The notes under the pieces: model-generated
Database searches by the model: none
Told to the model about the DNA's origin: nothing
Seen by the model: the letters and a program-made list of their open reading frames with translations, nothing else
Source: Thalia democratica
Taxonomy: Eukaryota
NCBI GenBank assembly: GCA_965202585.1
Contig: OZ241826.1
Coordinates: forward strand, 36,766,001 to 36,830,000
Reading direction: 5' to 3'
DNA: 64,000 nt
Position numbers and translations under genes: made by a program
In this document: one piece after another, positions 3,231 through 62,900 of the stretch
Layout of the letters: each line of letters begins with the position of its first letter
How positions within the stretch are numbered: the stretch's first letter is position 1

Positions 3231-4766
3231 AGACAAACCTTTCTTCGTTCCATCCAGACGCATTTTCCTCTTCATGCATATAGCTGTAAACCAATTTTTC
3301 ATTCTGTTTTAAATATTCATATTAAATTTTTCTACGGTAATTACTGTTTTTAAAATTCAATTTTAAATTTTTATGCAAATGATAAGCTTTGAAAATAAAT
3401 AAAGCAGAATAATAAACTATAATTAAAAAACACCGGATTACTAAAAGATTAAAAAAAAAAAAAAGCTAATTGCATCAATTACCATAATAAAAACATTTAT
3501 GAGACACTAATAATACTATTTTAAGTCAGTGTTCAACTGTGGTATAAAAACACTGTATTACTTGTTAAATTCATGCGTAACTTTATGAAGTTTGTTATAC
3601 ATTCATCAGCATACACAAATCAAAACCTTCTAGTAAATGAAATGACCAAGAATGTCTGGAACTAGGAAGTGTGAATTTGCTCTTGTCACAAATCTTCTTC
3701 TTATATGAAAAATCATTAGATTGTAATTTTCTTTTTTACTTTATGAAATAATCTATTCCATTGCTTTTTTAAACGAAAAAATGTTATAGAGCTCCATATT
3801 CACAACAGAAAACATGAAAATATAATTAAAATTTGAAATAATTTCTTTTTATCAGAAACTTTACTATAAACTAAACTATAATAATAACACATACAGATAA
3901 TACAGATTTAACTGTTATGTTTAAGTATTTGTCTTGGATACAAATCAAAAATTATTATCATTATAATTTTTCAAATTATAATGATAATTAAGCTTCAATA
4001 ATTCATAATGCAGATTTTCTTATTATAGATTTTCATTTTTTTTTAATAACTGTCTACAGAGTCGATATGCTTTCAATTAACTAAACTCATCTTTTATATG
4101 TTCGTTGTGTTATTGGCATTAAAAAATTGAAGTTTTAATTCTTAAACTCAATTTTAAAACTACATACATCAAGAGGTTTTTCATAGTTGGCCGAAATTCA
4201 ACACGAAAGTTATTTTACTGTACACAGACGAATGCATAAATTTTTTATTGTGCACAGTAGTTAAGTCTTTTTTTAAGTATATCAATATTATTAATCTAGA
4301 TTTGAAACTATAATTCCTTTTGATAATTATTTCTGATTTACTAAAAAAACATGAAACATTTAAACAAAATTATTCTTATATCGAAAACTTTCTTCAACTA
4401 ATACAGTCACAGTTTCTAGCGTTAACTTGTAAACTGTTTTCTTGTGAAAGCTACAAAAATCTTATATTTAATTATAATTGTATGTATCATTATTTGCTTG
4501 AGATTTAAATAATGATTATGAATAATTTGGTATAATTTAGTGGGTTCGTTTCAATTTTAAATAAAATCATAAAACAAAACAGTACAAATTCTAGTGCTAA
4601 GTTTTAAAAGATTATTAAGTTAAAACGTCAAACAAATTAAGAAGGTTCAAGTATGTGCCAAAAACTGCTCAAGTCCTAAATAAACCTAATAACAGTGTTC
4701 GCTGATTTCAACCACTCACAATTAAACCTTGAATGAACATAAAAATAACTTTTAGCAGTTTACTAT

Positions 4767-6288: not shown

Positions 6289-6951
6289 GGCCATAGGGGA
6301 GGTCCAACACTTTTTTTTTACAAAAATTAACTTTAGCTTTTATATGAAAGCATTAAAAACAAACTACAAGCCAGTTATTAAAGAATTCAAAAATATTATT
6401 AAACTTTGAAGATATTTTATTTTTTGTAAAAAGTTTCCAATACAAACATATGAACCGCAAATTTTTTGGGGTCAATTTTCTTGGAAATTTCTCCTCCTTC
6501 ACTTCTCAAGCAATTTTCTTAAACTTTGAGGAAATGTTACTTATATTAAAAAAAATAAACACTACTTGTGAATTTTAATAGTTTAAAAAATAAAATTTTA
6601 TCAAAAAAATTAAAATAAGAAGTGTATTTTTTTTCAAAAAAATAATATTTAGAATTTTTTTTTTTAATTCCGAAGTAAAGTTTTTTGTTATTGTATAAAG
6701 ATTAGACTGTGAAAGTTTAAAGAAAAATGCTTGAAAAATGTAGGAGGAGGTAGACTTTAAATAAAATAGTCTCTTTTTGCTTTTTTAGTTTTCCCTACCC
6801 ATGTGGAACATGTTATGCGGCCCGACTTTGACTGATCATATCTCAAAAAATAATTTGAATTTTTTAAAAAGATTAAAAGCATCTTGAAGCTTAGAAAAAT
6901 TATTATAAAATAAGATAAACTTATAAAAAACATGGCTAACCCCCTATGGCC
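6289..6951. mobile_element. Non-autonomous TIR element with TTAA TSD and GG termini (Kolobok-like MITE)
   Basis: TTAA(6285-6288)-GGCCATAGGGG...CCCCTATGGCC-TTAA(6952-6955). The interior resembles the copies at 34960-35275, 35968-36629 and 52830-53495. TTAA with purine-purine termini is the described Kolobok signature; piggyBac ends start CCC. Confidence 0.8.
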
Positions 6952-9739
6952 TTAATCTTTATCTTAATAAATTAAGTCAATTTATCCATTTTTGAACTTT
7001 TTATTACTCAACTAGAACTTATTTATTCCATACTTACCAAAGTGTTCCAACTAGATTTCAGACTGAAAAAGTTTATAGATTTCTGGGTACTTTCCTTGAG
7101 GATGTTGTAGTTAGCTTTTTTGCAAAAACTTCATAAAATAATGTTGCTGGTTCATTGTGGTAACCAACTTTCTGTAACTCAACTTAGTGGATCCTCTTTG
7201 TCAAACACCTAAAAAGTTTATTTACATCTTTTATTCAACTAATGCATATAATTACCATTTTAACCTTTGTTCAAGAGAACTGTACTTTTTTTCATTAAAT
7301 GTTTACAGGGTTCCCAATAAAATTTTATTATAAAATTTTAGAATTAAAAACAAATGTTATAGGAGGTTTTTTATGAATACAAATCAGCAAAAATGACTTT
7401 TATTTAAAAAGTTTTATATCAGAATTCTTTTATTTATTGATAACTATTTTTAAATCTTACTTAACTTGGTATATTTATTAAAACAATTACTGTTAATTGT
7501 TTTACTTAATCATTTGAAGTTCACATAACTTTTTCTTTACTTATTATAAGATTTAAAAGTGCAAATACTTTTAAAAATTACAGAAACACTGAAAAAAAAA
7601 ATTGGTTTATATTTACTTTAAGGTAAATTTAAGGTAAGAAACATGTTCAAATATAAAATTTCGACACAAAAAATATATTGTATAGATAAACATTTCCTGT
7701 CATCATCAAAACAAAAATAAAAAACACATTTTAATTAGCTTTACAATACCTTTTCAATGTTATACTATTTAAAACAGTTTCTAACCTTTAATTTAACTTT
7801 ATTAACTTTAATTTTTATTTAACTATTGTAAAAGTAGTCCCATAAGTGTGTACTTTTAAAATATGTAACCTGGAGGAAATTTTTAAAATATGGACAAAGT
7901 TTGCCATAACCATTTGTCAACCCTGTTTTTAGCCAAAATTGTTTAAGTCCATGTTTTTCAAGGATTCGAGGTTTTTGGGCCACCTAAGTATGGTATTAAA
8001 ATGAGTTTGTCAACATTTTTTATATTTTATAGTATTTATAACAAAATAATGTAAACTATTTTCTCTCATTGATGATAAACTAAGTGCAGGAGCAGAATTG
8101 TAATATATATACCGTACACCATACAAAAAATCTAGTAATTTTTATGTAACTTGATTTCGTTGTAATTGTAGTAGTAATAACTATTTTCATACACACCCAA
8201 AATTATGATGAATGTATGTATGTCTTAGACTTAAAATATGCCTTAAACATAAATTTTCATTTATAGGCATTTTGATTAATTTTGGGCTATATATTGTATT
8301 GATCAGACAAACATGCCAATTTTTTAAAATTTAAGTTGTACTTGGTTATTGTTTGGCTACTAATGGTAGAGCTTTATCTGTAGATATATTAAATTTATTA
8401 AGTATCTTAGTAAAAATAAAGTTTCCTGTAAGAGTGAATGTAATAAAACTTAGTATGTTATGTATCTGGCTTACCAACTAACGAAGTTGATGAAGAAAAA
8501 ATTGGAATAAAGAAATTATATAAAATGATTAATTATTCAACACTTGAAAAGTTCTTAAAAATTTGTTTCGTTAATAAAAATGTTAGTGTATAGAAGGAAG
8601 AAAAACCACTAAAGTTGTCAAAGGCCTTTTGAAAAACATTTCCAGGTTTATGAAAATACAAACTTATTTTATTTTGTAAGTATAAAAAATTTGTCTTATC
8701 AGTAAAAAAATTTGTCAGTATAAAAATATTGGAAAATAATGTAAATTACTTTCAAAAAGTCTTATGATAAAAAAAATTCCTAATACTACCAAAAATGTAT
8801 ATGATAGACTTATTGTATCTAATATAAACTTAATTATTACTGGTAAAAGCTGTTTAAAGTTCTTTACTTTCTTAGGTTTAAATTTTTTTTAATTACTGGT
8901 ATATTTTATTTTAATGTGAAATTCAAGGTTTTCTAGGATTCCAGGTATTTTTGCAACCCTATATGAATCATTCAATTACTATGCATTATTTACTCAAATT
9001 AAAGTAAACATAATCAAAAAAGTTCCATTATAACAGCCAACTTTGTTTCTTTCTTTGAAATTTATTTTTTAATTTCTCCTTACTTTCAAATACCCATTTT
9101 TTATATTTGTTTACCAAGAATAAACATCAATTTTCAAGTGCATTTGATGTGAAATTTTTACTTAACGTGGTGTTTACTTGTATTTTTTAGGCAAAGTTTT
9201 GTGAAGTTTTTGTAAATTCTTAAAATAATCTAAATTTTTCTAAGAAAACTATTAAAATATTATTTAAATTTCATCCAAAATGACTAGTTAGTTAGTTAGT
9301 TAAGAAATAAGTGAAAAAAGTGAGATAAAACAAAACTAGATAAAAATAACTAAAACATATTATTATCTTGGTGAAAGCAAAGTAACTTATTTAGTAATAA
9401 TGAAGTATATATTAATCTTTAAAAAAAGAACTTCAATTTAGAAGCTAAAAGACTTAAAAATTAATTGATGTTTGTTTAGCACACGTACTCACTATTTAAT
9501 CATTTTAAAGTAATAAGTTTTTTTTAAGAGTACAAACTTAGTAGTGGAACAAAAAGAACTACAAAAAAATAAAAAATGTAGGTGTAGTGTGTTGCAACCA
9601 TACTATTTGCATAAATAGTGTTTTTTCAGTAAAAAAATATTGAAAATTAAATCATAAAATTTTTGAGACAAAAATAAAAAAATGTTAATAGAAAAAATGT
9701 TTAAATTATATTTAAAGTTCCAACAAGTAATATTAAACT

Positions 9740-34959: not shown

Positions 34960-35275
34960 CAACTTTTGTTTTTTAAAATTTTTTGAACTCCAAAGTAATG
35001 TTTTTTTTTAATAAAGATTAGACTGTGAACGTTTAAAGAAGACTGCTTGTAAATTGTAAAAGGGGATAGATTTTAATAAAATAGTCTTTTTATAGCTGTT
35101 TTACTTTTCACTTCCAATAGGGAACCTTCTATGCAGCCCGACTTTGATTAGTAATATCACAAAAACTAATTTGAATTTTTTAAAACGGTAACAAGCAACT
35201 TAAAGATTAGTAAAAACTCTATAAAATAAGATCAACCTGTAAAAAAGCATGGCTTACCCCCCTCTATGGCCTTTA
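34960..35275. mobile_element. One-ended fragment of the TTAA/Kolobok-like MITE family
   Basis: Colinear with 6640-6955 (AAAGATTAGACTGTGAA...CCGACTTTGA...AAAATAAGAT...CTATGGCCTTTA); no left end found. Confidence 0.75.
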
Positions 35276-35967
35276 TTTATCCAACATAATAAGTCATAGT
35301 TTAAATGGTATGGCCCGTCAAAAAAAAAATCATATGGGCTACAACGTATGTTCTAGCTTCTAAACCACTTGTACTAAATAGTCTAAGCTTCTTCTTAAAT
35401 AATTACTATGTTCTTTCAATTTAAATGCAAGTAGAAGCAATGCCTTTTTAATAATTGTTTTATTACAATTTTACTTTTTAAATATATGGTTAAAACTGAT
35501 TTTACAAAGGAATCTATTTAAGATGAAAATTCTTGTAATAAAATATATTCATTAAAAAATTCAAACATTTACTAAGTTTCAATGCAAACGGATTTTCAAA
35601 CTGTTATTTTGCAATAATAAAATAAAAAAAGACAAACCATTTAAAAGTTGTTAGTAAATCAATAAAAAACTAATTATATGGAAAAGTATATTGTTTATAT
35701 TTTAGTTAATCTTAATTTGGTTTTTATACTGAAACTAAAAATAATTAAGATTATATTTGATTTTGAACTTTTGAAAAGTATATAAACATATCAAAATTTG
35801 TTACACATTGTTTAAAAATTAAGTTATTATAGCTTAATTTTAAATGTTATAACTATTTAGTTTAAAAGTAACTTTATTTGCAAAAGGCTTATTTCTTAAA
35901 ACTAAAACGGTTTATTATACTTAATATATAAATTTGGACAAAAAACAGTAATATAAAAGAAATTTTA

Positions 35968-36629
35968 GGGCATAGGGGTGGTAAACACCCTTTTTTGGTT
36001 TTTGATCTTATTTTATAAAGTTTTTACTAAGCTACAAGATGCTTTTTACAGATTTTAAAAATTCAAAATAATTTTTGAGATATAGCCGGTCAAAGTCCAA
36101 GGCAACAAGAGCTTCCTTATGGGAGGCAAAAACAGACTATTTCACTAAAAATCTATCTCCTCCTACGTTTTTTGAGATAACTACCTCAAACTTTTAGGAA
36201 ATGTTCCTTGATATATTTAGAAAATTCTGTAGGAAGGAATTTTTGAAAAATTAAAAAACAAAACTTTTATATAAAAAATAAACAAAAAAACAGTTTATTT
36301 TTTGTTTTTTTGTTATAAAATTCTTATTTTTTAATTTTTTTGAATCTGTTCAGACAGAGTTTTTTAAATATTGCAAGGAACATTTCCTAAAAATTTGAGG
36401 TAGTTATCTCAAAAAACGTAGGAGGAGATAAATTTTTAGTGATTTCTTGTTATTTGCCATTTTAGTTTGCGCCTCCTATAAGGATCCTATTGTTGCCTCC
36501 GACTTTGACCGGCTATATCTAAAAAATATTTAGAATTTTTTAAATCTGTGAAAAGCATCTTGTAGCTTAGTAAAAACTGTATAAAATAAGATCAAAAACC
36601 AAAAAAGGGTGTTTACCCCCCCTATGCTC
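35968..36629. mobile_element. Kolobok-like foldback MITE with ~300-bp inverted arms
   Basis: TTTA-GGGCATAGGGGTGGTAAACACCCTTTTTTGG... pairs with ...CCAAAAAAGGGTGTTTACCCCCCCTATGCTC-TTAA. The arms stay complementary almost to the centre (GATATAGCCGGTCAAAGTC / GACTTTGACCGGCTATATC). Confidence 0.85.
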
Positions 36630-36769
36630 TTAAATGCTATTTTCATAAATTTAGAAAAAAACATCTAGTAAATGAAAAATTTTTTTTATAGAAATATAAA
36701 ATTCTAATATGGAGAGTCGGTATAAAATTTATTTTTAGTAGTAAATATTTTTAAAATCTATAAAAAGTT

Positions 36770-52497: not shown

Positions 52498-55400
52498 ATG
52501 CTAACAGTCGAAATTGTAGCACCTACTAGGAAGAATAAACAAAAATACACTTCGAAATGGAAATCTGTTCCTGAGTTTAAAGGTAGTTGATTATTACTTT
52601 ACATAAATAAGACTTATCTATTAAATACAGTATATTATTTTACTAATAGACTGGATTATGCCTGATGTTTCTAGTTCATACCATGTAAGATGTAGATATT
52701 GTAAGAAGAGATTACAAGCAAAATGCTCAAGTCTTAAATACCATGCTAATACTAGCCAACATTTGAAAAAAGTTAGTTTTAACAAATCATCCTACCAAAA
52801 ATTTTGAATAACAATTAAAAACATGTTAAGGGCATAGAGATGTAGATAACCATTTTTACAATTTAGTCTTATATATTGATTTTTAAGTAAGCTACAAGTT
52901 GCTTTTTACAAATTTAAAAAAATCAAATTAATTTTTGAGATATAGCAGGTCAAATTGGACGACAACAATAGGTTACTTTTGGGAGGGGCAAACTAAAACA
53001 GCAAAAAAAAGACTACTTCACTATAAATCTATCTTCTACGTTTTTCGAGATAAATGCCACAAACTTTCAGAATATGCTCCTTAGAATTTTTAAAAAATTG
53101 TGTCGGAAGAGAATTTAAACAAATAAATAATTTGTGACAAAAAAAAAAAAAAAAAAAAACTGTTTGTTATTTGTTTATTTTTTTATAATCTTATTTTTTT
53201 AATTTTAAAAACATTCTTTCTGACAAAGTTTTAAAGTACTTTAAACAACATATCCTGAAAGTTTTAGGTATTTATCTCAAAAAACGTAAGAGAATATAGA
53301 TTTTTAGTGAAGTAGTCTTTTTTTGCTGTTTTAGTTTGCCCCTCCCAAAAGGAACCTATTGTTGCCTCCAACTTTGACCTGATATATCTCAAAAGTTGGT
53401 TTTTATTATTAAAATCAGTAAAATCCATCTTGTAGCTTAAAAACTCAATAAAATAAAATCAAAATGTGAAAAAAGTGTTTAACTCCCCTATGCCTTTGAA
53501 ACTTTTATTAAAATTTGTTAGCATTTCTTGGTTTTAAAGATAACTAAGTTAATTTTCATACTGCTCTACTATTTGCATGTAGTTTTTATAGATATTCATG
53601 ATTAAAATTTCAGTAACAGGTTAATTCATTAATTTTTTTATAAATGGGCCTAAATAAGCATGCATGTTTTCTAAAATATTATCATTTTGTATAAACTTTA
53701 CCTGTACACAGTCGTCCATTAAGTATGATGAAATAATCTCGCTGAAAAAAATTTGTACAAAAAGTTAAACATAGTTTAACAAAGTTTGATTTCTTTGTTT
53801 TAAAATTGGTTTTCTTGTTTTTCTGCTTTAAGTATTTAAGAAATTATGTAAGTTTAAATCCAACTAGTTTTTGCCTATACAGTTTGAAAACTACTTTAAA
53901 TTCTTCATAGTTTTGACAAAATTTTCTTGCAGAATGTATTGTTAGAGAAAAGTTTCTGTAAGACTAATTTAAAGAAACTTTTTTAGCATTTTTCTTAAAC
54001 TTTGTTGAAATGTTATTGGGAAATACAATAAGTTATTTAAAAACTTAAAATTTTTAATTTAATTTTTTTAATTGATATTTAAAAAAAAAAGCAAATAGGC
54101 ATCAGGATGTTGTTTGTATAAACCTAAAATTAGTCAATTTCCTATTAACTGTTTTATTTTGTAAAATTGTATATAGAATTCTTATCATATATGCAAAAAC
54201 ATAACAAAATGAAGATATTTCAGCAACAAGCAGTAGAAATATTCTCTTTTAGAAATACTTTGTAGTACATTACCATAAATACATCAATGAAATTTTTAAA
54301 AGAATATCAATTTTTTAATGAGAAAATTTACCCTTTTTTCAAATTTTCAAAGAATTCAGACATTTTTTAACACTAAACCGAAGAAAACAAAATGTCTAAA
54401 AAAATTTGCTATATAAAAGCTTCTAAGGTATTTTTAGTAGTTGCTGTTGGCCTTAATTTTGACATAAATTTGAGGTTTTTTCAACTTATTTTTTATTTTA
54501 AAAAACTAAAAATTTGCTACATTTAAGCTTAAAAAACTTTTATCAAACTTCAAGCAGAATAGAATCAAAGCCAATTTAAAAAAAGGAAGTCTAGCTATAA
54601 ATAACTAACTAAATCTCTGGGTTTAATTTTAAAGTTACTAAAATGTTCATTAGCCATTTGCCAGCCCATGTGCTGAATTTATTTTTTAATTCTAAAATTA
54701 GTATTAAAATTGTAATGATTTTACAACATAAAATAAACATAAACAAGAAGAGTTGATGTTTTCTAATAAGATAGGCATAACCATAAAAATTTAAACTAAA
54801 GAAATATATATATAAAAGAAAAATTAAATGTAAAAATTTATTAAAATCATTTAACTAAGTTTAAATAAATTAACCTACCTGTAAGTAAACAATAAAAATA
54901 GAAAAGATTAATTTTTCAAAATCCCTAAAAAGTTGTCAATTATTTTCATTTGTAAAATCATTTTGACCACAAATGCTTTTTCACAAAATTTATTGTAGTA
55001 TGAATTTTTGTCATTTTAATAGAAATCAGTTTATAAGCAGACTTTTGAAATAGAGTTCTTATTGATTTACAATTAGTTACTTGTATTGGAGCCTTATAAA
55101 CACCAGGTTCCTTCATCTTCTACAACGGCTACAACAAATAAATCAACTCAGGCTAAGCTACTTGAAGCAAAGCTGGCCATGCACTTAGCTATGCATGGTA
55201 CAATGTCCTCAAGTACCTGCTTGCTCAAGTGCTTGAAGGCAAGCATAAGTAATGACGAGATTGAATCAGCAAGTTTGGGGCGTACTAAGTGTACTGCAAT
55301 AGTAAAAAATGTCCTTGGACCAATGTGTAAGGATTTGCTTAAAAAGGACATTGGAAACGGTCCTTTTTCCATATTTGTTGATGAAGCAACAGATAAGGCT

Positions 55401-58400
55401 GGCCACATCAGCTATTTTGGTAAGAATTAAACAAGTAAATCTATATTGTAGATACAACTTTTATCAAAACTTTAAAATATTATATATGTATTTTTTTTTA
55501 GTTAAAGTTTTTTACAAACAAATTAAAATAATTCTTTTAAGGAGCTGCAATAAGGTACGTTAGTATATCTGACAAAACTCTAAAATCATCGTTTCTAGAA
55601 TTAAAATGTATAGAAAAAGGTACAGGACAACTAATGGCCACGGCAGTGGAAAATATTCTACTGAATTTTGATTTAAAATTTCGAAATTTAGTTGGTATAT
55701 GTAAGTTCATTGTTTTTATTCTTAATATGATTTTCTTTACTTATTAGTTGAAAAAAATGAGTTAAATTTAATTTTTTTATTTGCATATATTTTTTTATTG
55801 ATTTCAAAATGCTAGATCAAGAACTTGAGTTTTTGTAAAATAACAAACTTGTGTAATTTGTCTTTTGTATAGCCAAATTTATTTGAAATCGAAATATTGT
55901 ATTAAAGTTTGTAATAACACTAGTTATTGCAAGATCATATAAGTTATAAATAGTCTTCAAAAATATACAAAAAATTTCATTATCAACAAAATTAGCACAA
56001 ACTATAAAAAAAAGGTTCAGACAGAGCTGCTTCCATGGTTGGAAGAAAAAATGGAATGCAGACAGTTTTAAAAGAAAAGTATAAGCATTTAATCTCAATC
56101 AACTGCTGTAATCACGGGATTGAAAATGCGTGTGAAAAGTCGGCGCTGAACTTTTTACCTTTAGAAGTAAAATTATTACCTCTAAAGTACCATTATTATT
56201 TAGTATTAGCTTGTGCAAGTATAAATATAAATTATATCACTTTTGCATACCTTAATAGCTTAAACAAGTTATATATTTTTCCTCTTGTCTTTAACATTTT
56301 ACTTGTTTAAATTTTTTATTAGTTTATTTAATTTAAAGTCATATTAAACTAGAACATCAATAATCATATATTAGTATGATATATTTAGTTTATAATTTTA
56401 TTGCTATTTATTGTACAGTTAATAAATATTAACAGTTATAAAGATTAAAACTATACCATAATTAAATAGTCTTATGATAATCAAATGTATCACCACTTAA
56501 GTAGATATATATTTAAAATATGTAACAGATTCATGACCTTATATCCAGCACCTATAATTGGTTTGCAAATTCTCCCAATAGACGAATTATGTACGAAGAT
56601 ATGTACAAACAAATTTATGGTGGTGTGCCAAAACGGCTTATTTCACCAGGCTCTACTCGCTGGCTGAGTATAGTAGATGCTAGCGAGAGAGTTATAAAAT
56701 ATTGGGATGGCCTAAAATTATTTTTTGATCAGGTGTTTACCGTTTAAAGCATTGTAGAACTATTTAGTCTTGTATGTATTTGAATTTGTAAAGTTCTATA
56801 ACTTTTTTCTAAATATAAATTATATTCTATGATGAAACAGTTTTGTGCACGGGAGAAGTGTTCTACTGCAAAACGGATAGTAGGTCTGCTAAACAACCCA
56901 GAAATATATGTATATATTTCTTTCTTACTGGTGGTGTTACGAAAAGTAGGTGTATGTTCACATAATTAAATGCTGATGAACATGATTTAAGTAGTTTTTT
57001 ATAGGTTAACAAGTGCAACAAACTCTTACAGAAAGATAATATTGAACCTGCAGTACTATATGAACAAATAGAAACATGTATAAGAGAGCTGAAATTTATT
57101 TATATAGATCCCGAAACTGGTAATGTAAACGTTTTGTTTTACATTTTAAAGATTTTGTTTTTTTCTTAATATTAGAAAAAAAAAATTGTTTACCGCCTAA
57201 CTTAAAAATTTATCGCCTAACTTATTTATTAAGGTTTTGAGAGAAGTCAAATAGATTTAAGACAGCCCGCAGAGAGAGAATTGGCTAAGATAGATATAGA
57301 TCATCAAAATACAGTAATTAATTTTGTTTTTTTAATAATAAATTTAATGAGAAATAAATTTTCTGTTGACTTGCAGCAAGTTCTACCATTATCTAACGTT
57401 TGTAATAGATTACTTAATTATTCAATTGTATCTAAGAATTATTTTTTAAACAAATTTAAGAAGTGTTCTTTAGTGTGTAAAGTTTTAGTTTCTTAATGTA
57501 AATTTTTTACACTAGTACCTAAAATAGTATACTAAATATAGATTAGGTCTTCATGCAAAACCTACCTGAAGAATCTTTTAAAAGAGCTAGAAGCACGCAT
57601 ACCAAACTGCTTAAACTTGCTAAAAGGTGTTTCTATTTTTAACAGAGTAAGCATTCTTTTTAACTTCAATGAACATGTCATTTTATATTAAAAATTACAA
57701 AAAATAGGCATTTAACTTTCCGCATCCATCAATCAGCATATTGCTTGAAAGTAATACAATAAAAAATGTGCTTACCCAAGCTGAAAAAGATCTTATCTTG
57801 AATGAGTGGTCATTTTTACCCTCAGAGTGTCGACCACCATTAGGTAGCTTTGCTTATTTATAAACAACTTTTATAAGCCATTTCTGTTATATGCATTATA
57901 ACTTATTTTTAATGTTGAAATAATTACAGATATAACAGGTGTTAAATTTTGGATGAATCACAAGGAAAACGAAAACAGCTCATATCCAACGCTAGCGAGG
58001 TTTGCACTTAGAATGCTTACTCTACCACATTCCAACGCTGCCATAGAACGAATTTTCTCAACAATGGGAGTTGCTAAAGGACGTCTCAAAAACAGGATGG
58101 GTATTGATCTGCTCAACTCGATCTTAATGATTAGGTGAAATTTTTAACATATTATATATCTTGAACAATGATGCTTACATAAGTTTTAGGGAGAGTTTTT
58201 GATGTTTTTCCATAAACTATTTTACACAGAAGTTTAGTTCAGAATACAAACACGTGTTGTCATAGTTTTGAAATAAAAGAAAATTATATTGAAGATATAG
58301 GAAGTTCCTCAATTTACGATTTCACTGAAGAAGTTTTAAGAATTGCAGCTGATATTTCAGACTATGAAGATGTTTATTTAGAACAGGTAATTTACTAACT

Positions 58401-58555
58401 TTTACAAGGTATACATACATTTATAATTTTTTTTGTTTACATAACAAAATTTATCACAGTTTTATTCTTAGTACAAACTTATTATAGGATTTTATGTTTT
58501 AATTTTTTTATAGATGACTGTCAAGTCATTATTTCAAAGGTTTATCAAACGATGA
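52498..58555 (+). CDS. Intact 14-exon gene encoding a predicted 669-aa BED-finger hAT (Blackjack-like / ZNF862-like) transposase or transposase-derived protein
   Basis: Hand-spliced exons, all introns GT-AG and phases consistent: 52498-52582, 52650-52771, 55077-55419, 55542-55700, 56015-56166, 56529-56732, 56841-56945, 57005-57119, 57234-57313, 57542-57646, 57708-57843, 57930-58134, 58230-58386, 58514-58555. The total is 2010 nt with no internal stop. Motifs: BED-like KYTSKW...DWI...CRYC...HANTSQH; SLGRTKCTAIVKNVLGP; FSIFVDEATD (Asp1); LVGICSDRAASMVG (Asp2); CCNH (CxxH); YNWFANSPNRR; TRWLS; FW...YPTLARFALRMLTLPHSNAAIERIFS (Glu, dimerisation domain). The start codon, the exon 3 acceptor (55077, or in-frame 55107) and the last exon are less certain. 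AATAAA at ~58595. Confidence 0.9.
52830..53495. mobile_element. Kolobok-like foldback MITE inserted in intron 2 of the hAT gene
   Basis: TTAA(52826-52829)-GGGCATAGAG...CCCCTATGCCT-TTGA. Long inverted arms homologous to 35968-36629 (GAGATATAGCAGGTCAAATTGG / CCAACTTTGACCTGATATATCTC). Confidence 0.85.
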
Positions 58556-58899
58556 ATTTGTGTAGATTATTATGTAATATATTTTCACTAAAATAATAAA
58601 AGTTCTTAATTAATTGTGCTTTGTTAAGTTTTGTAAAAGAATATAATTAACTTTTTAACTTTTAAATTTTTCTACACTTTAAGTTTTTACATACTGAGGA
58701 ATGTAAGAGTTTAAAAAAATAATAGTTTGAAAAAAACTCTTACAAATTTTTAAATTTATATTAACAACAGCACGTGATAAATAGTTTTTAGCTTTGAAAT
58801 AAAATAACTGATGGTATTTTTAGCACTAAAGAAAGAAGCTGCCTAAACTTTCTCAGAAGGATATCAAAAATGACTTCAATAATTTGAAATTTAAGTTTT

Positions 58900-59330
58900 G
58901 CTTTTTTTATGACTTGTGTCTTGTCGTTTCAACTTGTTTCGATTCGTTTAAAAAAAAAAAAACAAATTTTTGTTTGTTAGAGTAAATGCATGCAAATTAG
59001 AATGTAACAAATAATAGTTTTGTGATAGATTAGCTATCATCCAATATATAGAGCATGAACAAAATAACATACAGTTTTTACGCCTAAATATTTTTATAAT
59101 GCAGTTTATAGAAAACATATTTTCTATATTTTATGACTGTGTTTGTGTTTCAACTTGTTTCGATTCATTATAATTTTTTTTTTGTTTGTTACAGTAAATG
59201 CATGCAAATTAGGATGTAACAAATAATAGTTTATATCTTCTAGATTAGCTGCAATTCAGTATATAAAGCATGAGCATAAAAACATAAACAATTTTTACGC
59301 ATTAAAGTTTTTAGAATGTTGTATGTTAAA
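58900..59330. repeat. Diverged tandem duplication, unit about 224 bp
   Basis: TTTATGACT...GTTTCAACTTGTTTCGATTC...GTAAATGCATGCAAATTAG(A/G)ATGTAACAAATAATAGTTT occurs at ~58907 and ~59131. Confidence 0.85.
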
Positions 59331-59600
59331 CGCAAATTTAAATCTGTAAGTAAATTGTATTTAAAGATTTGTTAATTATAGTTTATGTGCATTAATATAT
59401 TTTGTTTTTAGATTCAAGCATTAAGTTCACATTTGTTTAAGTGCATTCTTTAGTGGCATACAGTTATGGGTAAGTGTTTTTATTTTTGTTTATCTTTTAT
59501 ATAAATCTCATTAACGTCCCTATATGTTGAATTTTTAAATTTAAGTTGTGTGAAGCTAGATAATTACATAGATCTAAAAATACAGTTTTATCACATGTTA

Positions 59601-59982
59601 CAGGGTTGCCACTTTACCTGGAAACCTGGAATTTGACAATTTAGGCTAAAATAACCTAGAAAAACCTGGAATTTGAGAAATTTTGAAAAAAAACCTGGAA
59701 TTTTGATCAAAAAACCTGGAATTTTTAATATTTTTAACATTTTCAGTTGTAAAATTTTGATTTGAGACAAAAAATCTATCATATAATTAAGATTTTTTGT
59801 CATCATTAAAAAAAATTTTTATTTAATAACACATTTAAAGTAACTTTACAGTATTTTTACGATATTTTTTTACTATTTAACACAGTATTTTAAATAGAAA
59901 TTAACTTAAAACTAAAAATAGACCCAAAAGTGTGTACTTTTAAAAACCTGGAAAAAAATTGAAAAAACGAGTGGCAACCCTG
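59601..59982 (+). mobile_element. CAGGGTTGCCAC-ended MITE with AACCTGGAA subterminal repeats
   Basis: Perfect 12-bp TIR CAGGGTTGCCAC / GTGGCAACCCTG. The TSD is not clean (CATGTTA before, CATATAA after). Confidence 0.85.
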
Positions 59983-62900
59983 CATATAAGTTATACTTTC
60001 TAAGATGATGTTGGTTGTTGTAATAAGAACTTACACTTACATAATTTTGTTTTATTCACAGGCCACTAGTAAGATATTTATATAACAATACTTTTTTAAA
60101 TTTTTTTACTGAGAAATTATTTTTCCAAAGTGTATTAAAATCCACAGTTTTCATTTATTAAAATCGTTTCATATTGAAGAATTATGTACCTCAAGTACAT
60201 TTTTTGCATATGAAATCAATTTAAATCTAATTCAATTAACTTCGAAAATTTCATAAACATGATTAACAGTATTATCAATGAATACACAATTTTTTCTAGT
60301 AAAATTTTAAGTTTGATAAAATGTATTTTGTATTTGTATCAAAGTTGTTTTTTTTTTATTTTTTGTTTAACTTTTTAATTGAAGTATTTGTACAAAATTA
60401 TCAATTTTTAATGTTTTATACTTGAATAAATGTTATAGCTTTCTACTGTTAATGATATTTTTTGTTTAGTATTAAATGTGTTTGTTCTAGTTCAACTTAA
60501 TCTATTTTAAAAACCTTTTTGAATTGACAGGAATTCATATCACTTAAAGCGCTGATTTCAGTTAAGCCATTAGCCAACCGCAAAAAGTTGGTTAAGATTT
60601 CGAGAGAATGTTCCAATTTGATAGTGCCTGTCAAAGTTGCAAAACAAATAGGATTTTATTGTCCCAAGAGGACTCATCTCTTCTAGTTAGTCTTTTTTTT
60701 AATATTTCAGTTATTCTAAGTAATTCAGCAATGTTTGTAAGTTATCTATTTAATTATTTTTAGACCATCTTTCCTAAATAAAAAATACTTTGGATTTTAA
60801 GTTAGTTAAAAAAAAGTTTTTTACCTTTCAAAACTTTTATTTTATTTGACAACTTAAATAAAAGTACGATTCCAATTTTTCCACTTAATAATATTTATTT
60901 TCTTTTTCTAACTCTTCGTTTTAAAATGTTTAATAATATTATATTTAACCTCAATGGATTTTCAAATATTATAAAAATTATTTTTGAGTGATAAACAAGT
61001 TTTTGAAATTCAACTTTTTCTGTAAAAGTTTCAAATACAAACATATGTAAAACAAAGCTTTTGTAGTAATATTTCAAAAGTTTTAACTAATTTACACAAC
61101 TTTTCTTATGTTCTTAAGCAAAGAACCTTGAATTAAAAAAAAATTGGCAGTTAAAAAAAAATAATATATATCAATTAAATTTAGATATATTTTTACTAAA
61201 AAGCAAAAGAAAAGCAACAAATTTTAAAATTTTTATATAAAGATTTTTATTTTTATTAGAATGCTAATCCAAGTTTAAGTAAACATTAGAGATTGAAAAT
61301 ACTCAAAATGCTTTATTTTCTGTTATAATTTGCTCTTTTTTTGTGGCATGTAATACAACTTTCTGATCAAAAGCACTGTAACTTTTATTTTTAGTTAACT
61401 TTAATTTTACTTCATGAACACTGTGTCGGTTGAATTGAAGTTTAATAGATGCTAAAGAATTTTGAAAAAATTTATAGCTTGATCTTACTTTGTAGATTTT
61501 TAACTAAATTATATGTTGTTTAATTAAATTATTTAACAAATTTTGAAATATAGCTGTTTAAAGTTGAGAGTACATTTAATTTAAAAAATATTTAACAAAT
61601 GTTAAATTTACAATAATAGACAATAAAATGATTTAGATAATTATTTGAACTAGAAGAAAAAAATTTAAATTGGTTTTATATGTGTTTTGTAACTATAAAT
61701 ATATGAATCTTTGTTATATACCAAGTATTTCATTTCCTAATTGTTTGCAATTTTAATTATAATACATTAAAAATAATATACTTCACTCCTAGGGTAACTT
61801 GAAGTAATTTGTTCTAAATGTTTTTTCAGGTAAACTTTAAAAAAATATTTTTTTTAAAGTTTTTTACCTCTTAATTTTTAATTAGTTCATTTATTACTAA
61901 CAGTTTTATGTAACAAATTTTGCACTAATTAATTTTAGTTGTGTTCAAAAGGTTCACAAAATGTTGTTCTTGTGTTTTTTGAAGATATAGAACTAATAGT
62001 TTCAAAACAACTTAGGTAGTTATATAAACTACTTCTTTTTCAATTAAAGTGTGTTCAAAAAAATCTTTTTTTTTTGTATTATTAAATCTTTTAAATTTAT
62101 TTAATTTTGAACAAAAAAATAAATATTTCTAGTTATTATTTATAGTCATGTTTATTAAAAGATCAAACATTTTAAAAATTATATACTGTAGCAGTTAACT
62201 TTTAAAACTGATGTATGTTAAAAGATTAATAGTTTCAATAAAAAATTCCTCCTTGTATGGTTTTTTTTACATTTTGGTGTTATTTTTTAGATAGAAAAAT
62301 TAATTAAGTGGCTTAAAAATAAAAAACAGTTACTGTTTAAAGCAATTTGTTTTAATTGCTTTGGAGTTTCTTTGTGTTTTAAGCCAACTTTACAATCTAC
62401 AATGTTGTTACTGATGTTTTTTCTACTTATTTTTTATTAGTTAAGAGTTTATTTAGTTTTAGTCTATTTAAACTATTTTTTACATTAAATGTAAAATTTT
62501 ACTAACTTAGTATACAAACTTGTTAAAAAACTTTAGAAATAGTAAACAGTTTATTATTCAGTGTTTCAGCTTATGAATTGTTGGTTTTGTTAAAACTTAT
62601 TTGTCTTGTTGATTTCTGATTTACTAGTTTTTAGAAATGCTTAAACAAATCAGTTGTATAAACCAAGCTTAAATAACATTTTAAAATATTTTTAGATTCA
62701 TATTATATTTTTATTAAACCTCTATTTTCGTTCAGATGTTTAAAAATAATTGAATGTTTAAAACTAAGTTAAATTTTTACCTCGTACGTTGAAAGTTTTG
62801 TTTTTAATAGAACATTTTGATATTTAGTAGTTTTGATCTTAAAATGCACTTTAAGCTGTATTTTTCTATCAATTTTCTTCATACTAAATTTAAAGTTATT

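Follow-up and report, generated by a model that had tools for sequence, protein, structure and literature searches.

Here we describe an intron-rich gene of hAT transposase descent from the pelagic tunicate Thalia democratica, located at positions 52498 to 58555, on the + strand, of a 64,000-nt stretch of contig OZ241826.1 (GenBank assembly GCA_965202585.1, positions 36,766,001 to 36,830,000 of the forward strand). This whole stretch, which has a GC content of 24%, is referred to below as the window. The reading that we favor, with confidence that is about evenly poised, is that the gene is a host-maintained, catalytically intact hAT transposase gene. This reading is based on selection acting on standing variants at one locus, equal rates of change on the two branches compared, a single copy, a fixed junction and the absence of recognizable transposon termini. 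Purifying selection between lineages, taken alone, would fit an active element as well; it is the polymorphism data and the fixed single locus that fit such an element poorly.

Homologous contigs were reached through short, exon-sized open reading frames (ORFs) of the Tara Oceans and other marine assemblies. The closest, designated as the L009 lineage, is represented by a group of 17 collinear contigs from several Tara samples, which are 97.7-99.8% identical. A more distant set, group 2 (L001-L008), has ~58% amino-acid identity.

When 14 exons are joined solely at GT...AG sites, a stop-free frame of 1980 nt (659 amino acids) results, running from an ATG at 52498 to a TGA at 58553-58555. Retention of any of the 13 introns would lead to an in-frame stop within 1-60 codons, the length of 10 of the 13 is not divisible by three, and the GC content of the exons is 36%, compared to 15-27% for the introns. 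A preliminary description of this DNA had proposed the same 14-exon, 13-intron architecture; the intact frame was rebuilt as proposed, its length of 669 residues has to be corrected to 659, and its last intron and exon are doubtful. Past the exon-13 donor, three codons are followed by an in-frame TAA in the window and in the L009 lineage alike, and in the latter the exon-14 acceptor AG is absent and an in-frame stop lies within exon 14. Because of this lack of conservation and the shared read-through to TAA, the likelier structure, as predicted from the sequence comparison, consists of 13 exons, 12 introns and 649 amino acids. The features of the gene are as follows.

52498-52582, + strand: exon 1, 85 nt, with the ATG start; start and peptide kept in the group 2 contigs and in L019
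52650-52771, + strand: exon 2, C2H2/BED-like zinc finger (Cx2Cx13Hx5H); equal length and phase in L003 and L004
52772-55106, + strand: intron 2, 2335 nt, grown by insertions that include a foldback miniature inverted-repeat transposable element (MITE) at about 52848-53479; the homologous intron of L004 is about 420 nt
55107-55419, + strand: exon 3, with the first catalytic Asp, D161 (FVDEATD); 82% amino-acid identity to P0162
55542-55700, + strand: exon 4 (rebuilt model and comparison with homologues)
56015-56166, + strand: exon 5, with the second catalytic Asp, D229 (CSDRAAS), and CxxH (C257, H260) (model and alignment)
56529-56732, + strand: exon 6, with the RW motif R321-W322 (TRWLS) (model and alignment)
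56841-56945, + strand: exon 7 (model and homologues)
57005-57119, + strand: exon 8 (model and homologues)
57234-57313, + strand: exon 9 (model and L009)
57542-57646, + strand: exon 10 (model and L009)
57708-57843, + strand: exon 11 (model and L009)
57930-58134, + strand: exon 12, hAT dimerization domain with the catalytic Glu, E565 (AAIERIFS) (Pfam PF05699 and Hermes alignment)
58230-58398, + strand: exon 13 with the probable read-through end GTA ATT TAC TAA at 58387-58398; the TAA is kept in the window, L009, L026, L027 and L028
58514-58555, + strand: doubtful exon 14, 13 amino acids; acceptor AG lost and internal stop in the L009 lineage

At the start of exon 5 there is a tandem acceptor, AG/GTTCAG/ (56009-56020), which is also kept in L009, L003 and L004. 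Conservation of its second AG is attributable to coding constraint, since this AG falls within the codons for Ser and Asp in the catalytic CSD motif. An introner-like origin of the introns was considered and rejected, as no likeness was detected among the introns or to other sequence in the window, save for the MITE in intron 2.

The catalytic motifs claimed in the preliminary description are all present, in the forms FVDEATD, CSDRAAS, CCNH, TRWLS and AAIERIFS. In an alignment of 13 sequences, comprising the window protein, the L009 lineage and 11 relatives at ~30% identity, residues D161, D229, E565, H260, R321 and W322 are invariant, and the catalytic motifs are also kept in the group 2 contigs. 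Pfam was run on single-exon pieces, which are short and mostly gave no match. Exon 12, however, matched Dimer_Tnp_hAT (PF05699; E 5.9e-9, 36 bits versus a cut-off of 21.4) and could be aligned to residues 548-599 of the Hermes transposase, in which the Glu of AAIERIFS (E565) corresponds to Hermes E572. From the order of the motifs, we take D161 and D229 to be the equivalents of Hermes D180 and D248. For the BED-like C2H2 finger that had been proposed, a Cx2Cx13Hx5H pattern is visible and is kept in group 2, and the relatives match other C2H2-type finger models, but the zf-BED match of the exon piece is weak (E 0.07, 13.6 bits, below the cut-off of 20.6). DUF4371 (PF14291) and PF27073 (FAM200-ZBED5 RNase-like) had no match on the window's own short exon pieces; both, as well as Dimer_Tnp_hAT, were found on the nearest relatives, and Atlas features of exon 3 point likewise. 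The relatives' domains, together with these exon 3 features, place the gene, as a predicted member, in the Buster / FAM200-ZBED5 kind of hAT.

The spliced protein (residues 15-641) is collinear, end to end, with proteins of ~650 amino acids found by the exon 3 search. The best full-length relatives, P0019 (E 5e-92, 29% identity) and P0053 (Photinus pyralis XP_031328721, 32%), are compact hATs of the Buster / FAM200-ZBED5 type, which share with the window gene a length of ~650 amino acids, the domain order and the same Asp-Asp-Glu (DDE), CxxH and RW columns over collinear alignments at 29-32% identity. P0019 is encoded by a 1980-nt ORF that runs without interruption, and both ends of its 3.3-kb contig show inverted subterminal repeats of the TTAGCAT type; P0053 has a gene range of 2038 nt and two identical copies at two loci of one firefly chromosome. 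Unlike these compact relatives, the window gene has 12-13 introns, one full-length copy and no recognizable ends. Because the relatives are compact and intronless or nearly so, with at most one small intron, the ancestral state was probably intron-poor, and the introns of the window gene are probably derived.

At the DNA level, the L009 lineage could be aligned to the window from 54866, within intron 2, to 59436, about 880 bp beyond the stop. Homology returns at window positions 60658-61029 (L009 positions 4349-4737), with a score of 67 versus a shuffle mean of 27 (standard deviation 4), and extends in all ~1.25 kb beyond the stop. Exons 3-13 are intact in the L009 lineage, and introns 3-12 are found at identical positions with GT-AG borders. 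The exons contain two 3-nt indels, versus 231 gap columns in the introns, and none of the 1.77 kb of exon sequence is frameshifted. The proteins are 84% identical, and the ratio of non-synonymous to synonymous substitution rates (dN/dS) is 0.12-0.20, at a synonymous divergence (dS) of ~0.64 over 575 codons; this ratio, which had been named as a check on domestication, is not near 1. The same picture was obtained from variation within the L009 group, where 23 of the 35 single-nucleotide polymorphisms (SNPs) in exons are synonymous and 12 are non-synonymous (corresponding polymorphism ratio pN/pS 0.14, binomial p 1.4e-8), with no exon indels among the 17 contigs. In group 2, exons 1-8 have the same lengths and phases as in the window gene, except that exon 3 is shorter by 3 nt; introns 1-7 are common to both, and dN/dS among the sublineages is 0.17-0.39. 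Using L004 as the outgroup, we counted 12 private amino-acid changes on the window branch and 14 on the L009 branch, equal enough to argue that the window copy is not decaying. Taken together, the comparisons point to strong purifying selection, both between lineages and among variants of one collinear locus.

Simple identity is a poor guide to selection in this DNA. Identity by substitutions between the window and L009 is 84.4% in exons and 80.8% in introns, and the AT-rich introns (15-27% GC) change more slowly than synonymous sites, which makes exon-versus-intron identity a poor test; selection was therefore judged by indels and by synonymous versus non-synonymous counts. The excess of synonymous over intron change can be seen both between the two lineages (dS ~0.64 versus ~19% intron mismatches over 55107-58386) and in the diversity of the L009 group, with 23 SNPs in ~363 synonymous sites versus 24 in 1777 non-exon sites. 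It is probably caused by G/C sites, which would mutate fastest in a genome of 24% GC.

Searches with single exons had a limited yield: a scan of JGI metagenomes with exon 3 detected no relative, a protein search with exon 2 gave no candidate, and one with exon 12 returned the L009 ORF only. Upstream, a candidate homology of the window to group 2 was weak and merged with exon 1, and it was not retained.

To assess copy number, four DNA data sets, among them X1, X3, X4 and the marine metagenome X5, were mapped on window positions 54701-60700 at a threshold of at least 80% identity. A single contig covers 56022-58899 in X1 (depth 113, 12 differences from the window) and 55684-58900 in X3 (depth 231, 18 differences). 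Unique pieces of the 3' flank have depths of 98-241, equal to those of the gene contigs, and in the exon bins from intron 5 through exon 13, all contigs passing this threshold together reach 1.1-1.7x the depth of the single contig. Since the gene has the depth of its unique 3' flank and the summed depth is barely higher, the part from intron 5 through exon 13 is effectively single copy at this level of identity. The same 3' junction region was present in X1, X3 and X4, that is, in two named organisms and one metagenome. Within the window, tblastn revealed no second copy of the family.

The absence of a terminal inverted repeat (TIR) pair or of an 8-bp target-site duplication (TSD) around the gene, as stated in the preliminary description, was borne out in the sense that no candidates exceeded chance. 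Pairing 42-52.5 kb with 58.6-64 kb, we found 5 pairs of TIRs with an 8-bp TSD, compared to 7 in a reversed-sequence null, and a relaxed TSD scan of the same flanks gave 11 pairs versus 7 in the null. The best pair, 47799/61979 (14-nt core, TSD 7/8), was rejected because it shows no extension and its score equals the shuffle mean. Inverted subterminal k-mers common to both flanks were fewer than in the null, and a generic inverted-repeat search recovered AT-rich chance pairs and the intron-2 MITE only. Overall, no TIRs, TSDs or inverted subterminal repeats were found within 10 kb upstream and 5 kb downstream, although degenerate or very distant ends could escape such scans. The 3' flank is divided into three segments by comparison with the L009 lineage.

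58556-59436, + strand: non-coding, homologous to the L009 lineage at ~80-84% identity
59437-60657, no strand assigned: insertion of ~1.2 kb in the window lineage, absent from L009, which holds a hyperabundant MITE
60658-61029, + strand: L009 homology (4349-4737) resumed, by local alignment

The first of these segments contains a tandem duplication of ~200 bp (58905-59101 and 59129-59318, 78% identity between the copies), which is also found in L026 (2440-2602) and is absent from L009, and hence represents a structural polymorphism. It also contains a 68-nt non-coding block (59245-59312) that is ~95% identical to L009.

The hyperabundant MITE lies at 59598-59986 and has perfect 12-nt TIRs, CAGGGTTGCCAC, at 59601-59612 and 59971-59982, as well as repeated subterminal CCTGGAA motifs. 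Its summed depth in X1 is ~700,000 versus ~113 for single-copy sequence, and it is therefore present in thousands of copies. Contigs from X1 and X5 skip exactly 389 nt (381 + 8) at this position, with the joint 59597->59987; this implies an 8-bp duplication and a hAT-type MITE, with an insertion that is polymorphic or specific to this locus. There are 12 TIR-like matches to this MITE in the window, compared to 0.32 expected. Ends of this type (CAGGGTTGCCAC or CCTGGAA clusters) bracketing the gene were also looked for, and none was found near the gene in the right orientation. A second, foldback MITE family is responsible for the element in intron 2, which had been described as ~670 bp and as leaving the frame unbroken; the frame is indeed unaffected, and we put its length at ~630 bp, with arms at 52848-53037 and 53291-53479. 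Further copies lie in the window at ~35065-36633 and 6730-6960. The family, with arms of ~160-190 nt, is common to the window and the Tara contigs L003, L010 and L019, and the L009 lineage has a member of it at a different place within its intron 2.

In the mechanism that we propose, a single-copy, immobile gene descended from a Buster / FAM200-ZBED5-type hAT transposase would have been kept by the host lineage. Its transcription and splicing would be those of a host gene: the 12 conserved introns, all GT-AG, and possibly one more would be removed, yielding a protein of ~650 amino acids with a C2H2/BED-like finger, an RNase-H-like DDE core (D161, D229, E565, CxxH and RW) and a C-terminal hAT dimerization domain. 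By analogy with the hAT family, the finger would bind DNA, the protein would dimerize through its C-terminal domain, and, after DDE-catalyzed nicking, hairpins would form on the flanking DNA. Given that purifying selection keeps every catalytic residue, our analysis suggests that both DNA binding and DNA cutting have most likely been retained, which we consider likelier than a mere DNA-binding role. A possible function would be to serve in trans as the transposase for the abundant hAT-type MITEs of this genome.

An intron-rich active element, the alternative that was also named in the preliminary description, is possible, if doubtful in our view: the gene would be the autonomous member of a hAT family that has few copies, persists by vertical descent and carries a transposase gene with 12 introns, in an element of at least 10 kb whose ends went unrecognized and whose partial copies are internally deleted, non-autonomous derivatives. 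Intact catalytic residues agree with this, an active element would itself be expected to show purifying selection between lineages, and a number of observations weigh against a host-maintained gene. Depth is elevated in two stretches, one over intron 2-exon 4 and the other from 58300 on, and is that of a single copy between them. The several-fold extra depth from the end of intron 2 through intron 4, which amounts to 4-8x the single-copy depth in the exon 3-4 bins, comes from contigs 83-93% identical. By the depth of variant letters, the window's organism has roughly one to four additional copies of exons 3-4, all partial; of their listed differences from the window in these exons, the three single-base ones are synonymous. 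A contig of 1356 nt from X5, in which two filler bases link 55791 to 59386, has a depth of 332 versus 24 for the intact form (14x) and looks like an internally deleted, non-autonomous derivative. There are several family lineages, and those related lineages from metagenomes include pseudogenes that share introns (L020, with an insertion and a stop; L021, with a frameshift; and the decayed P0009). Homology to the sister lineage is known on the 3' side only, the alignment with L009 starting in intron 2; the conserved 3' flank has no coding neighbor, with stops in all frames, and could itself lie inside a large element. Also, no RNA run containing the gene was found, and its splicing and expression are predictions. 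Additionally, the hyperabundant, polymorphic hAT-type MITEs with their 8-bp duplication imply that some hAT transposase is active now or was recently. An autonomous element is, however, at odds with the lack of TIRs, TSDs or inverted subterminal repeats within 10 kb upstream or 5 kb downstream, with the finding of one full-length copy at the 80% threshold and one 3' junction in two named organisms and a metagenome, and with the pN/pS at one collinear sister-lineage locus, which a fixed insertion would not give. Moreover, beyond the stop, sister homology continues at a neutral-like level of identity for 1.25 kb or more, versus ~0.5 kb after the ORF in the compact relatives. The idea of a host gene under selection that retains its catalytic triad, as put forward in the preliminary description, thus finds support in both selection ratios, the single full-length copy, the conserved introns and the missing ends, and is weakened by the partial and deleted copies and the pseudogenized relatives; in the same way, the proposed check of copy number, synteny and shared introns revealed one full-length copy and shared introns, along with partial and deleted copies and homology confined to the 3' side. 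Finally, it is conceivable, though unlikely, that the 12-intron architecture characterizes a whole pelagic-tunicate hAT lineage that was mobile with its introns, as the several diverged copies, some intact and some dead, and the deletion derivatives would suggest, the window copy being a stationary, host-fixed source that drives the MITEs with 8-bp TSDs in trans.

Two further explanations accept that the copy is immobile. A domesticated gene with a sequence-specific DNA-binding or regulatory function only, like the vertebrate ZBED genes, in which the catalytic residues would be structural and no cleavage would occur, is in our judgment very unlikely. It would account for a selected, single-copy gene without ends, and many known hAT domestications are transcription factors (PMC3606216, PMC10027918). 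It does not sit well with the invariance of all six residues of the catalytic set in the window, L009 and the 11 relatives, or with the motifs kept in group 2; that all catalytic residues are retained over a dS of 0.64 and more speaks for selection on catalysis. The notion of a recently immobilized transposon copy, functionless and intact by chance, is extremely unlikely, even though the gene sits among decayed repeats and no RNA run containing it was found. Such a copy would not be expected to have a locus-level homologue at dS ~0.64 with both genes intact and dN/dS of 0.12-0.20, to have no frameshift in 1.77 kb of exons while the introns accumulated 231 gap columns, or to lie on a branch as slow as that of its sister.

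The host-maintained reading can be set beside several known systems. Kat1 of Kluyveromyces lactis, RAG1, PGBD5 and THAP9 are catalytically active domesticated transposases, immobile host genes that keep DDE chemistry, and we liken the window gene, known here from its sequence, to them as a working model. Catalytic residues have been lost in several ZBED genes. The vertebrate domesticated hAT genes, including ZBED5, FAM200A/B, ZMYM6, ZNF862 and GTF2IRD2, are likewise hAT-derived, fixed and under purifying selection, and gained introns after domestication (PMC3257199, PMC3606216); the window gene differs from them in having no fused host domain and in retaining the full catalytic set. Among domesticated genes, a survey counted up to 8 de novo coding introns, and ~4 introns for each kb of coding sequence in old domesticated genes (PMC3257199), whereas the 1.95-1.98 kb of the window gene are interrupted by 12-13 introns, or ~6.2-6.6 per kb, all of them within the transposase-derived ORF. 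In this respect the novelty is the extreme intron load, as a hAT-derived gene or element is itself of a known kind. Ac and Tol2 are intron-containing autonomous hAT elements. BuT2 of Drosophila buzzatii, which has a five-exon transposase gene, is another intron-containing hAT (PMC3942097). All three resemble the window gene in that splicing is needed before translation and the catalytic core is intact, but their introns number 3-4 and they are bounded by clear TIRs and 8-bp TSDs, compared to at least 12 introns and no ends found for the window gene. In salps, hATs have been reported as the most transcribed DNA elements (PMC10686999).

If the gene is a host gene, it would represent a lineage-specific hAT domestication outside vertebrates and plants with the whole catalytic machinery, and a pelagic tunicate would have in it a candidate enzyme for programmed DNA cutting. 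Intron gain on a massive scale would also be unusually clear in this case, with 12 introns in a 1.95-kb ORF whose relatives have at most one small intron. If it is instead a mobile element, it would be a DNA transposon that needs 12 splicing events, which to our knowledge is well beyond the 3-4 introns of known hAT elements. If it is a stationary source that drives MITEs in trans, it would be a transposase poised between a parasite and a gene of the host, and would exceed every described transposase-derived gene in intron density. Under either a host or an element reading, the gene is a plausible transposase source behind the abundant hAT-type MITEs, and the Tara Oceans contigs provide ready comparative material for dating the introns.

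Two minor observations concern the window sequence and the mapped contigs. In exon 13, the window has private non-synonymous states at 58234-58236 and 58322 (L596 and F625), the residues in X1, X3, X5 and the L009 lineage being Val and Ser; the window states are either rare alleles or assembly errors. Also, the 54701-54900 bin has ~13-21x the single-copy depth, and in contigs from X1 and X3 (depths 500 and 646) position 54992 is joined to 60481, the shorter side having only 27-30 nt. The 54701-54992/60481 joint may represent an unrelated repeat or a further deleted form.

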